Shown here piece by piece: positions 30,598 through 35,300 of a stretch of 64,000 nucleotides of DNA. Origin of the DNA: Magallana gigas. Its lineage: Eukaryota. The notes under the pieces are model-generated. The model ran no database searches. It was not told where the DNA came from and worked only from the letters and a program-made list of their open reading frames with translations. The stretch lies in contig NC_088858.1 in assembly GCF_963853765.1 (NCBI RefSeq), positions 52,142,001-52,206,000 of the forward strand, read 5' to 3'. Numbering within the stretch: position 1 is the first letter of the stretch; each line of letters starts with the position of its first letter. Made by a program: the position numbers and the translations under genes.

Positions 30598-30622
30598 GAT
30601 GATGATGATGATGATGATGATG
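30598..30622. repeat. (GAT)n microsatellite
   Basis: About 8 consecutive GAT units. Confidence 0.9.
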
Positions 30623-32351
30623 AAATATGAATAATATGCATGAATGTAATTATCATAAAATGCACCCTATTACATATACATATAAAAATAAATAAACTAA
30701 ACCAAAATGCCTACCGGTAGTCATCGTGGTATTTTCCATCCACAGACTGTGTTGTTTATCCGTGTACTTTGTGTAGACTGTGATGTATACTTTAGGGCCA
30801 TGCACACAAAATGACAGTAAATTCATACTAAATCCACAAATGGATTGGAGAGGAGCAGATCCTAAAGAAGCGCAAATCAACAAAAGCACAAAACCCACAT
30901 CATTAATGATCTTTGTCCTTAATGATCAACATCCCAGGTTCTTTTCCCTTGCAGGAACTAACCAGTCAGTTTCAGGGATTGGCTTAGCACCAAAAGTTTA
31001 TAAAGCTTCTCCTATCCTCAGCCTTAAAATATTCTTTTATAATAAAAAATGTTATTCATCCTTAAAACTTTTTAAATGAAATAAAATAAAAGATACTTTT
31101 GGTGGTATCCATGCATTTTACGAAGTTATTGCAATTTCGGCCACGATAAATATAATGAACATTTGGGTTGAGTATTGTTTAAAGTGAAGAGTTTGCACAA
31201 GGTTTTGTTCAAGAAAAAATGAAATAGAGTAATTATAAAATGTATTTATTTAAAACTTGTTCATATACAATATGAACTAATTTGTACTACAAAGTGAACA
31301 AAATATACAATAATTTATTCAAATGCCACATACACAACAAAATAGCATTTCTTTAAGTACTGATAATAAAGCAAGACAAAAAGCCAGAATGGTACAAAGC
31401 GATGCCTGAATTCCATAACCAGATGTTTTGTATCTGTGTTGAAGACAGGGCTTAAATCCTTAATATAGTTGGACTGGGACTCGATGAATGTTGAGGTAAA
31501 GGCTGTCGCCACTTCCTTCCTCAAACAAGACCGACTGTGGACCTCGACTATTGATCTATGCTGCTCATTATCGGATATTACAGAATCCAAGTAAATTTAA
31601 CAACATACTTTTTTTCACATAGTCATTTCTCCCAAAAAAGTGAATTACCTCGTACAATATCATACAGAAATGCATATAACATGAAAAAAATTCTGAATCG
31701 TTGGTAAAATTGTAAAAATCCCCATCAAAATATTGTTGATATTTTTTTTTTAATGATTTACCGGTACCTGTCAGTAAACAACACAGGCTTGCAGCAAGTG
31801 TTTTAGGTAAATTGGAAGGGTTTTTTTTCATAATATTTTCTTAATTCTCTGCCTTATGTCTACTGAAGATCACAAAAAAATTGATCATTCAACCTGGTTT
31901 GATACCAGATGTTTTGAATGATTACCTATTGTGGGATTTAATATTCCAGCCATTTCCAGAAGATTTTGCACTAATAAAGATCAAAATAATAGAGAAATAC
32001 TGCTAATGTTTGTTGTGTTCAGCTGTTATTCAATCTGACACTGTCTAGTGTACAATAATACATCAATAAAATAGGGTTTAGAAACCTGCTTATTGTACCT
32101 AAAGACTAGGTTCACAGGGACATCATGTAATGTCATACACAGAATAAAACAAATACACATTTACACAAAAAAATACTCAAAATATATTGCACCAAACACT
32201 GGAGAATAAAAATCTTAGGACAATATCTTGATTTACAAAAAATATGGCAATAGCTAAGCTTTGTGTTTTGCCTCCTCTACAGTTTGGTGTCACTCAGTCT
32301 CACATGGCTCCACGCATCAACAAGAACTTCTCCATCATCCACAGCTGTTCT

Positions 32352-35300
32352 TTATCCAGACACAAGTGTGTAGATCATACTGTAAATAGACACAATAGTG
32401 TAGATAGACGAAAGTATGTAGATCATACTGTAAATAGACACAATAGTGTAGATAGACACAAGTGTGTAGATCATACTGTAAATAGACACAATAGTGTAGA
32501 TAGACGAAAGTATGTAGATCATACTGAAAATAGACGAAACAGTGTAGATAGACGAAAGTATGTAGATCATACTGAAAATAGACGCAACAGTGTAGATACA
32601 CACAAGTGTGTAGATCATACTGTAAATAGACACAATAGTGTAGATTATATCGAAAATAGATGCGACAGTGTAGATAGACGAAAGTATGTAGATCATACTG
32701 AAAATAGACACAACAGTGTAGATAGACACAAGTGTGTAGATCATACTGAAAATAGACACATGAACGGTGTAAGAAGACACAAGTGTTTAGATCATACTGA
32801 AAATAGACACAATAAAATAGATCATATCGAAAATAGACGAAGTAGTGTAGAGAGACACACGGGTGTAAATCAACTAAAAATAGACACACAGTGTAGATAG
32901 ATGCAAGTTTACAAGTTTACATAAGTATGCATTATAGGACTACTGTGGAATCATTTAAATTCAAGGGGGCCAATTTTCTTGGATTGTGGGGTATTTGCTT
33001 ATTCGTGGGGACGTAAATTCGTGGACGAGTTGGTTTTCAGTTTCAGTAGGAAAGATATTTCTTTCTAAATTTGTTTTCCTCAAAGATGTAAATTCGTGGG
33101 GGAGAGCTACCAACGAATACCACGAAAATTGAGCCACCATGAATTCTAATGATTCCACAGTATATCATTGTGGTTCAACATATTACGTTTATTAGAGTTT
33201 TAATTTTCAAGAATTAAGAACCTTGGCTGCGTTTTACAAAAGAACTTACGACTTACGACCAAATTAATGAATGTTTATTAATCACAAACTAATCTATATT
33301 TTATTGTAATAGTTGTAAAATATAATTATGGAAATCAAAATAGGTGTAAATAAATGGTTTGATATAAATTTTGTTCCACAAAGACCGTTCCATGAGACTG
33401 ACAATATTTACGACTTTGTTGTAAGTTCTTTGTAAAACGCAGTACTGCTTCTTTTAATTAACCTTCAAATTTCTAGCAATCTAAAACTCATTTCACCCTC
33501 TTAACATTTCAAATTAACACTGAAAAACTGTTCTTACCAGTATAAGTAGTAGAAAAATGAGATAAGATAGAAAGCCAGCTTGATCCATCCCTCCTTCTGT
33601 GCTCGATTAAGTTCGTCAGCGTTCATTATCGTGGTGGGGTCATACAGCCCCGGCCCACTCATGACCGGGCGATTTATGTACCTACAAAAGTTACAAATTC
33701 AACATTAAAATTGGGCCCCTTTCCCAAACATACATGTATGTATCTACACATACTTTTCCCAGAATTCTACAATGTTTTATGTCCAGGCATGCAAATACTG
33801 ATGATAGGTTCAATATAATTTAACTTTTATCATCTAGAACATATTAACATTCCTAAATTTTAAGTTATTAACTAATTACATGCATAATGAGTACAAGTAA
33901 AACAGTGGCAACAAAGACAATTAGAAGGTACAGTACAGAGTCAACAGAATGCATGTGACTCTTTTATCTTAGAACGACTTTTTTGATGCATACAAAAGTT
34001 TGCACTTGTCCCAATGCAAAGCAGTTTGGGTAAAACGTGGTAACGTACCTTCGTATATGGTAAATAATGAGAGGGATATTGAGGAGCACTGTGAACCACT
34101 CCATGGCCGTGATGAAGAGGAATGTAAACAGAATGTGGATGAAGTATTCCGGCAGAACCAGCTGTCAAATGGACACAAAAACACATCAATCACACAGGAC
34201 TTTCTAATATTCATTTGGCATGCATCAATACATGTACCGTACATGTATTATCATGAAAATCTGCATTTAATGCAATTCCCGTAATTCATTTTAAAAACTT
34301 ATATAGCAAAATATAGAGAAGTTGAGGTAATAAATTAACAGGTTCATATTATACATGTTATTGTACACGTGTATTTGTAATATAAAAATAAACCTGAATT
34401 ACTAAAATCAAAGTTTTTTCAAACAGATTGAATTAGATGTAACTTTCCTAGCTTTTTTCAATGTAAATATATATATAGTTAAGTGCAAGAACAACTAAGC
34501 AGAATATTCCTCATTAATTTATTGACATTATCATAAATTCTTGGCTTGAAATTGTTCCTGAAAATGACTTAGTCTGAGGGGCGTTGAGCAGTTAAAAATC
34601 TCTGGCCCATACCACTAACAGATAAGATCAATAACCTGTTTTGAGCCATGCAACCATCAAAAAGGGCTCAAAAGAATCATTATGATTACTGCTATATTTA
34701 GAAGGTTTGGATTATAGTTGTGTGTTATAACACACTTTAAATAAAAAAAAAAAGGAAAAATAACACCCTAAAACAACTTACTGGATTGAGGCTTCCACAT
34801 TGGTCTATTGGATTCTTGTAGTCTGTTTTGAGTTCATCGAAAGCTATTATCTATAAGAGAGAACAAAAAACATCAGTTTGAGTTCTACTTTACATTTATA
34901 TTCATTCAAAAGTATGCTTTATGTATTTTTTTTATTGAAAATATAAATGAGTGTTTCAGTTATTTCTTACAACTAAAGGACTCTTGGTATATGGGCCATA
35001 AAATCAATACTGTAGTTTTACTTTAAGCATACACATGTAGGTTTACTTTGCACAGGTATGCATACGAAGACTCAAGATTATTAATGGGTTTCAACTCCCT
35101 CTATTCTATAAGTCCTCAATTTAGAATACAGGGCTGTTGATAATGTTCAAAATAATTCCAGAGGCAAGTAAAGCAAAGGGATCAGTAGTACCATCGAATT
35201 TTTGAATTTCAAAGTAGAGCTACAGATATATAGAAATACATCATAAACATGATAAAGTTAACGTTTCCCATCATTTTAACATTTTTGCATATTATTTCAC

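Follow-up and report, generated by a model that had tools for sequence, protein, structure and literature searches.

The cornichon-1 gene of the oyster Crassostrea (Magallana) gigas lies on the minus strand of the window considered here, that is, the whole 64-kb stretch of DNA that was analysed, and its 28-nt terminal coding exon adjoins a tandem array of copies of its own splice acceptor, all of them in one reading frame. This arrangement raises the question of whether the penultimate exon can be joined to several of these acceptors, giving a ladder of cornichons with different C-termini, as an earlier note on this DNA had suggested, or whether a single acceptor is picked among near-identical decoys, a choice that, according to the same note, would itself need explaining. 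The evidence gathered below makes it very probable that the array is a lineage-specific, length-polymorphic intronic minisatellite of silent decoys in oyster cornichon-1, and that no isoform ladder is produced.

The cornichon gene and its repeated acceptor

The features of the locus are collected in Table 1. The spliced protein of 144 aa (P0209) carries the Pfam Cornichon domain PF03311, which exons 2–4 match at 32.5–49.8 bits (cut-off 29.2), and is identical to the RefSeq ‘protein cornichon homolog 1’ of Crassostrea (Magallana) gigas and C. angulata; the RefSeq models XP_011434816/7 likewise give 144 aa. Residues 2–143 of the 144 align with solved human CNIH1 (chain 9ovv_E, E = 5.9e-70), and CNIH2/3 and Erv14 also match. 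The length of 144 aa is common to molluscs and human CNIH1, with an alignment that reaches the last residue but one, and the molluscan orthologues, of this same length, end in ...YYLY(S/C)MIY(T/V)LVS(G/S/N). Judged by its sequence, the host gene is a clear orthologue of CNIH1, with a predicted role as cargo receptor in ER export. Since this C-terminus is conserved in molluscs, the 28-nt terminal coding exon should be ancestral, and the acceptor at 32379 is the one that yields the conserved protein.

Downstream of the coding sequence, the 3′ UTR opens with the purine-rich stretch GGATAAAGAACAG...GGATGATGGAGAAG, and AATAAA signals are present near 31319–31314 and 31250–31245 (minus strand). The high-copy sequence found in intron 4 consists of two MITE-like insertions that are separate from the array.

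Table 1. Features of the cornichon-1 locus, in positions of the window.
Feature	Coordinates	Strand	Basis and remarks
Exon 1, coding part	35621..35701	-	ATG at 35701; translation, RNA joint 34850 to 35621
Exon 2	34782..34850	-	Translation; joints 34161 to 34782 and 34850 to 35621
Exon 3, LVLPEYF...IYHIR + AG	34049..34161	-	Translation; joint 33677 to 34045 fits equally as 33681 to 34049
Exon 4, G + ...FFYYLY + TG, donor TG/gtaaga	33538..33681	-	Sequence, PF03311 at 49.8 bits, joints on both sides
Intron 4, 1158 nt, with the whole decoy array and two MITE insertions	32380..33537	-	Joint 32379/33538, GT..AG
48-bp minisatellite, inside intron 4	32380..32895	-	Sequence, Tandem Repeats Finder, script
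MITE-like insertion in intron 4, outside the array	32941..33163	.	Many genome-wide copies, inverted termini, loose read ends at the borders
Second MITE-like insertion in intron 4, outside the array	33225..33435	.	Many copies at 89–95% identity, inverted termini
Terminal exon, coding part, T ATG ATC TAC ACA CTT GTG TCT GGA TAA	32352..32379	-	Script, RNA joint
3′ UTR, about 1.06–1.14 kb	31211..32351	-	Stranded depth; contigs reaching 31484, 31353 and 31211

Nine acceptors of the form CAG followed by TATGATCTA were found in a single reading frame of the minus strand, both by reading the sequence and by script, where 0.03 would be expected by chance. They have ttt(t/a)cag before the boundary and TATGATC after it, and start exons at 32379, 32427, 32475, 32523, 32571, 32619, 32697, 32745 and 32796 (script, minus strand); a tenth copy, at 32873, has decayed to tttttag followed by TTGATTT on the same strand. 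Seven full units, from 32427 to 32745, carry intact decoy acceptors, the one at 32697 belonging to a 78-bp unit, and the two upstream copies, 32796 and 32873, are decayed. Tandem Repeats Finder describes the array with a period of 48 bp, 5.9 copies, 91% matches and a score of 459, and with sub-periods of 18, 30 and 78; the head-to-tail units extend over about 520 bp and fall inside the range of minisatellites (10–100 bp). All nine occurrences of the 12-mer YAGTATGATCTA in the 64-kb window lie in the array (9/9), against 0.03 expected from shuffles, and a search for the 48-bp unit elsewhere in the 564-Mb genome found none. A dispersed satellite or a transposon as the source of the unit was rejected, the unit being confined to one locus in the genome.

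The copies are also very much alike. In fact, unit 32523 is the same as unit 32427, the first 22 bases after 32475 are those after 32379, and the decoy at 32475, when read directly, is identical to the real acceptor at 32379 from –51 to +22 (73 nt). Moreover, AG is absent inside each unit, so that the branch point of each acceptor should fall within its own unit.

Joined to the TG at the end of exon 4, the acceptor at 32379 gives C-MIYTLVSG-stop, those from 32427 to 32745 would give stop-free tails of 16 to 122 additional residues, all ending at the same TAA (32354–32352), and 32796 and 32873 would give C-M-I-stop and C-stop, respectively. The stop-free frame is no sign of coding, because the sub-periods of 18, 30, 48 and 78 are all multiples of 3; in fact, two more frames of the array lack stops, one of them likewise on the minus strand (184 aa) and the other on the plus strand (218 aa). 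Neither the conservation nor the frame-specific constraint that would mark a coding tandem repeat was found: stops are missing from three of the six frames, four relatives lack the array, and the upstream copies contain stops. As for the earlier note, its nine same-frame acceptors, with their coordinates and predicted tails, were reproduced exactly by the reading of the minus strand and by script; its identification of the gene as a cornichon agrees with a PF03311 match above the cut-off and with the end-to-end alignment with human CNIH1, and its assignment of the 144-aa protein to 32379 is upheld by the molluscan orthologues, whose conserved final eight residues are those specified by the terminal exon.

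Acceptor use in RNA and the choice of the last copy

RNA was mapped on positions 30600–35900 as the raw reads of two poly(A) runs (X21 and X22) and as the contigs of two RNA runs (X5 and X37, the latter of which carries another species label). The sole joint that enters the array region is 32379/33538, a GT..AG joint on the minus strand that skips 1158 nt and is supported by 10 reads from 9 starts in X22, by a contig of depth 164 in X5 and by one of depth 43.6 in X37; X21 is too 3′-biased to cover exon 4. Furthermore, 50 contigs encode the exact 144-aa protein, the nine mRNA contigs examined, which come from nine other runs, all have the canonical junction (9/9), and all six transcript-derived ORFs of the 90% cluster end in CMIYTLVSG. 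No decoy junction was seen in those nine mRNA contigs, in the two raw runs or in the two contig runs.

The depth of coverage is in line with these junctions. On the gene strand, the three array bins have depths of 0.2/0/0 in X21 and 0.59/0/0 in X22, versus 7–32 on the 3′ UTR, and the value of 0.59, which amounts to about 104 read-bases, is due to the ten exon bases 32370–32379, covered at a depth of about 10. Gene-strand poly(A) reads on the array were found in neither X21 nor X22, and extended exon sequence was not found in poly(A) RNA, the depth being 0 beyond the real exon. Array contigs do occur in the RNA libraries, and they are faint (about 3 versus 164 in X5, and 5.2 versus 43.6 in X37, with an intron-1 contig at 2.5); those of low depth cover parts of the array at 97–98% identity, and the X5 contig at 32769–32976 continues into unique intron. 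As expected, they look like pre-mRNA or DNA carry-over, to which the presence of 22–37% of the array words in RNA runs is also ascribed.

At the protein level, a query with the 142-aa repeat-frame ORF gave no hit among proteins of 78–248 aa, and in a collection of 5.8 billion clusters no protein of 79–252 aa with the tail was found besides K1QF47, a model that lacks a transcript contig. In the JGI metagenomes the decoy-junction pattern gave 0 matches, and so did the canonical-junction control, the collection being one without oyster cornichon mRNA.

Alternative 3′ splicing, in the sense of at least two acceptors joined to exon 4 in mature RNA, was thus not found, at a detection limit of a few percent to about 15%. 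Several features of the data set this limit: a joint needed at least 3 reads to be listed, and rare variants are lost from contigs; reads resembling human DNA were filtered out, which may have thinned the junction reads from the highly conserved exon 4; in each raw run, two or three reads match two positions and might in principle derive from the array; and the RNA samples represent few tissues and conditions. Estimates based on depth put possible decoy use in the raw runs at no more than about 10–15% for any single near decoy and about 5% for the far ones, and in X5 at about 2%. Within this limited sensitivity, the ladder of C-terminal isoforms generated by acceptor choice is not borne out, since only the 33538-to-32379 junction is seen, which is the very outcome that the earlier note had named as speaking against its proposal; its fallback, in which one acceptor is picked among near-identical decoys and this has to be explained, survives.

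In the reading that we favour, each unit brings along a 3′ splice site that looks complete, yet exon 4 is joined only to the last copy, the one that stands before the original GGATAA stop and the 3′ UTR; the remaining eight or nine acceptor copies leave with intron 4, and the protein made is the ordinary 144-aa cornichon. Given the identity of decoy 32475 with the real site from –51 to +22, the choice must depend on sequence beyond +22. From +23 the real site is followed by the purine-rich GGATAAAGAACAGCTGTGGATGATGGAGAAG and then by the rest of the 1.1-kb terminal exon, and each decoy is followed by another pyrimidine-rich, intron-like unit. The purine-rich, enhancer-like stretch that begins at +23 (GGATAAAGAACAG...GGATGATGGAGAAG) would define the terminal exon, and such an enhancer-driven definition is the most likely explanation of the choice of the last copy. 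When equal 3′ sites compete, the upstream one is generally preferred, and less so under exon definition, according to published surveys (PMC9225289); an exclusively downstream choice is thus not the default outcome and constitutes a small, real puzzle.

Other ways of keeping the decoys out of sight were considered and rejected. A masking of the decoys by RNA structure was rejected because a 601-nt fold has z = –0.8 versus shuffles, with no structure beyond that of shuffled sequence, and recursive splicing or re-splicing via the decoys because the junction CTG/TATGAT, as read from the sequence, regenerates no GT donor. Transcripts whose stop codon lies in the last exon escape classical NMD. Concealment of isoforms by NMD was rejected as well, since every product would stop in the last exon, and the fact that decoy products are immune to NMD and yet absent points to splice-site choice.

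The absence of decoy junctions from the raw reads, from the contigs of the two RNA runs and from the nine further mRNA contigs, together with the zero gene-strand poly(A) depth on the array, makes it unlikely that the decoys are used at a low level, or in a tissue-, stress- or allele-specific manner, to give functional cornichons with 16 to 122 additional hydrophobic residues or with truncated ends. Such use would be compatible with the detection limit given above, with products that would escape classical NMD and with decoys that are intrinsically equal to the real site, one of them throughout the –51 to +22 interval. The 2012 model K1QF47 does predict a tail of +32 aa, yet it is a computed model without a transcript contig; likewise, two further frames are just as free of stops, the upstream copies show decay, cornichon keeps a constant length of 144 aa between molluscs and humans, and a conserved function is excluded, since four other oyster species lack the array and the number of its copies varies. 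More specifically, we regard it as distinctly improbable that a particular tissue, stress or array allele activates the decoys and that the repeat number sets a heritable ladder of C-termini. Were this the case, the addition of half or whole membrane spans, or the truncation of the last helix, would alter the ER export of cornichon cargo, and the array would be a VNTR that acts directly via splice-acceptor choice. Under the favoured reading of silent decoys no ladder is made, and the array is of no importance for protein diversity.

Variation, age and origin of the array

The number and the order of the units differ between haplotypes. In the independent chromosome assembly of C. angulata, the array has six good acceptors versus nine in the window, and five full units (270 bp) versus seven (366 bp); the unit order, for C. 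angulata as read by eye, is A, A, B+30, A, B, terminal in that species and A, B+30, A, B, B, A, B, terminal in the window. A third unit composition is given by the UniProt entry K1QF47, the gene model from the 2012 oyster genome, with a two-unit tail whose unit sequences are not those of the last two units of the window (IYTIVSIY) and are similar to the units of C. angulata. The comparison of these sequences supports the proposal, also made in the earlier note, that the array is a real VNTR, with three differing haplotypes (window, C. angulata and K1QF47).

No tandem repeat is present at the terminal acceptor in C. virginica, Saccostrea cucullata, S. echinata and Ostrea edulis, each of which has a single acceptor and an ordinary intron. 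This absence in four other oysters, together with the differences between haplotypes, indicates that the expansion took place in the gigas/angulata lineage and that its turnover continues. Directly next to the first, most upstream decayed copy lies sequence that can be aligned with the intron end of C. virginica, and the last copy runs on into the original stop and UTR.

The same comparison bears on a further possibility, namely that the array is retained for an effect in cis on RNA processing without being used as exon, for example as a U2AF or PTB-like sink or loading platform that tunes the removal of the last intron or 3′-end formation. The dense polypyrimidine tracts and AGs immediately upstream of the real acceptor, and the presence of the array in both C. 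gigas and C. angulata, would fit such a role, but copy number and unit order vary between haplotypes, the relatives without the array make the same protein, the array RNA lacks structure above that of shuffles, as reported above, and neutral minisatellite turnover accounts for everything seen, so that we consider this very improbable. An assembly artefact, in the form of an over-expanded or mis-joined repeat, which the earlier note had kept in view, has next to no probability left: tandem repeats are error-prone in assembly, and no more than about 0.6 of the sampled words are present in the best DNA runs (0.59–0.61 in 14 DNA-type runs, the runs listed coming from 12 studies), but array words occur in many independent runs, the DNA runs among them representing at least ten studies (the unit number of the window being as assembled), a similar array stands in the independent C. 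angulata assembly, repeat units are present in the 2012 gene model, and the low-depth contigs of the RNA libraries mentioned above cover parts of the array.

The sequences also suggest how the silent, turning-over array may have started. At the intron/exon boundary of C. virginica, gttgttgtctaattttag on the intron side is followed by TATGATCTACACTCTTGTGTCTGGATAG on the exon side, and the polypyrimidine tract and the exon end each contain the motif TTGTGTCT or a near copy of it. The array may have begun when two such copies of TTGTGTCT, by slippage or unequal exchange, led to the duplication of a 30-bp piece that comprises the tract, the AG and 14 bases from the start of the exon; the addition of an 18-bp sub-repeat, ATCTACACnnTTGTGTCT, would have completed the 48-bp unit. 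Both lengths, 18 and 30, are among the sub-periods reported by Tandem Repeats Finder.

Comparison with known systems

A search of the literature on oyster cornichon repeats or on minisatellite acceptor arrays found nothing specific. The nearest known kinds are intronic minisatellites or VNTRs and the experimental competition of duplicated splice sites. The intronic minisatellites or VNTRs, of which a genome-wide catalogue exists for the human genome (PMC8096271), have units of tens of bp with internal sub-repeats, a number and order that vary between haplotypes, a lineage-specific distribution and no RNA or protein product of their own, and in all of this the oyster array resembles them. The difference is that the oyster unit spans a working intron/exon boundary, so that a tract, an AG and 22 nt of true exon are carried by every copy, in frame.

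Repeated AGs in the same frame at the start of an exon, derived from local duplication, are also the hallmark of the NAGNAG or ‘wobble’ tandem acceptors (PMC2668829). In these, however, the sites lie 3–9 nt from each other, the second catalytic step decides between them and both are in use, whereas the oyster acceptors are 48 nt apart, have a tract and a branch region each, and only one of them is used. The locus falls outside the class of alternative 3′ splice sites, as the use of a second acceptor was looked for and not found.

Classical minigenes with duplicated splice sites reportedly go back to Reed and Maniatis in 1986. In the competition between equal 3′ splice sites (Carranza, Shenasa & Hertel 2022, PMC9225289), identical sites compete and the outcome is decided by the flanking exon and by intron or exon definition, as may be the case in the oyster gene. 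The latter differs in being a natural, eight-fold case at a terminal exon in which the most downstream site is used exclusively, contrary to the preference for upstream 3′ sites described there. The significance of the array is that of a natural experiment in splice-site choice, in which a copy that is perfect from –51 to +22, a span made up of the AG-free stretch where its branch point should be found, the tract, the AG and 22 bases of exon, is passed over eight times in favour of the last one.

The entry K1QF47_MAGGI (176 aa) derives from the same gene, and its last 32 extra residues correspond to two repeat units; unlike RefSeq and the transcript contigs, which give 144 aa, this computed model took a decoy acceptor, and it is an annotation trap, being a public entry that has a repeat tail without RNA support. 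Finally, when compared with the cornichon/Erv14 cargo receptors (CNIH1, PF03311), the oyster protein has the conserved MIY(T/V)LVS C-terminus and shows no difference of its own, and only the intron before the last exon is unusual.

Public models and the tiny terminal exon

Two public models of this cornichon gene in UniProt appear to be wrong. K1QF47_MAGGI (protein record P0214), of 176 aa, uses a decoy acceptor two units upstream, and A0A8W8HMS5_MAGGI (P0018), of 75 aa, lacks exon 2 and closes with residues foreign to cornichon. The tiny terminal coding exon of cornichon can evidently be overlooked easily by annotation pipelines: in the chiton Liolophura sinensis, the 136-aa model (P0024) stops at ...YYLYR and is without the final eight residues.

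Reads over the array and the 3' UTR

At the upstream end of the array (32724-32900), about three to four reads of the raw poly(A) run X21 lie in the orientation opposite to that of the gene, and in the other such run, X22, the same interval holds none; the X21 reads possibly stem from antisense RNA, from carried-over DNA or from repeat reads placed wrongly. In the 3' UTR, poly(A) read depth falls about four-fold at 31308-31484, upstream of the AATAAA signals, and the contigs assembled from RNA runs run on past this drop to 31211. Either alternative polyadenylation or a local polymorphism reducing read placement may account for the fall.

Two MITE-like insertions within intron 4

Intron 4 also carries two MITE-like insertions, for which a first look across the genome gave about 3000 candidates, at 86-95% identity. 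Both strands of the two insertions have very high depth in the RNA libraries, with loose ends at the insertion borders.

MITE-like insertions in intron 4 (window coordinates)
Feature	Position	Location	Length	Inverted termini
Insertion 1	32941-33163	intron 4	~223 bp	~42 bp
Insertion 2	33225-33435	intron 4	~211 bp	~28 bp

A paralogue and the codon at the last exon junction

A cornichon-family paralogue, in which three exons match PF03311, is located at C6:7694359-7695611 of genome G000 (loci L005, L007 and L009), on the same chromosome-scale contig as the cornichon-1 gene. In cornichon-1, the last intron splits the junction codon TG/T (33538-33539 and 32379). C. gigas, C. angulata and C. virginica have Cys here; Ostrea, Saccostrea and the remaining sampled molluscs have Ser at the same position.
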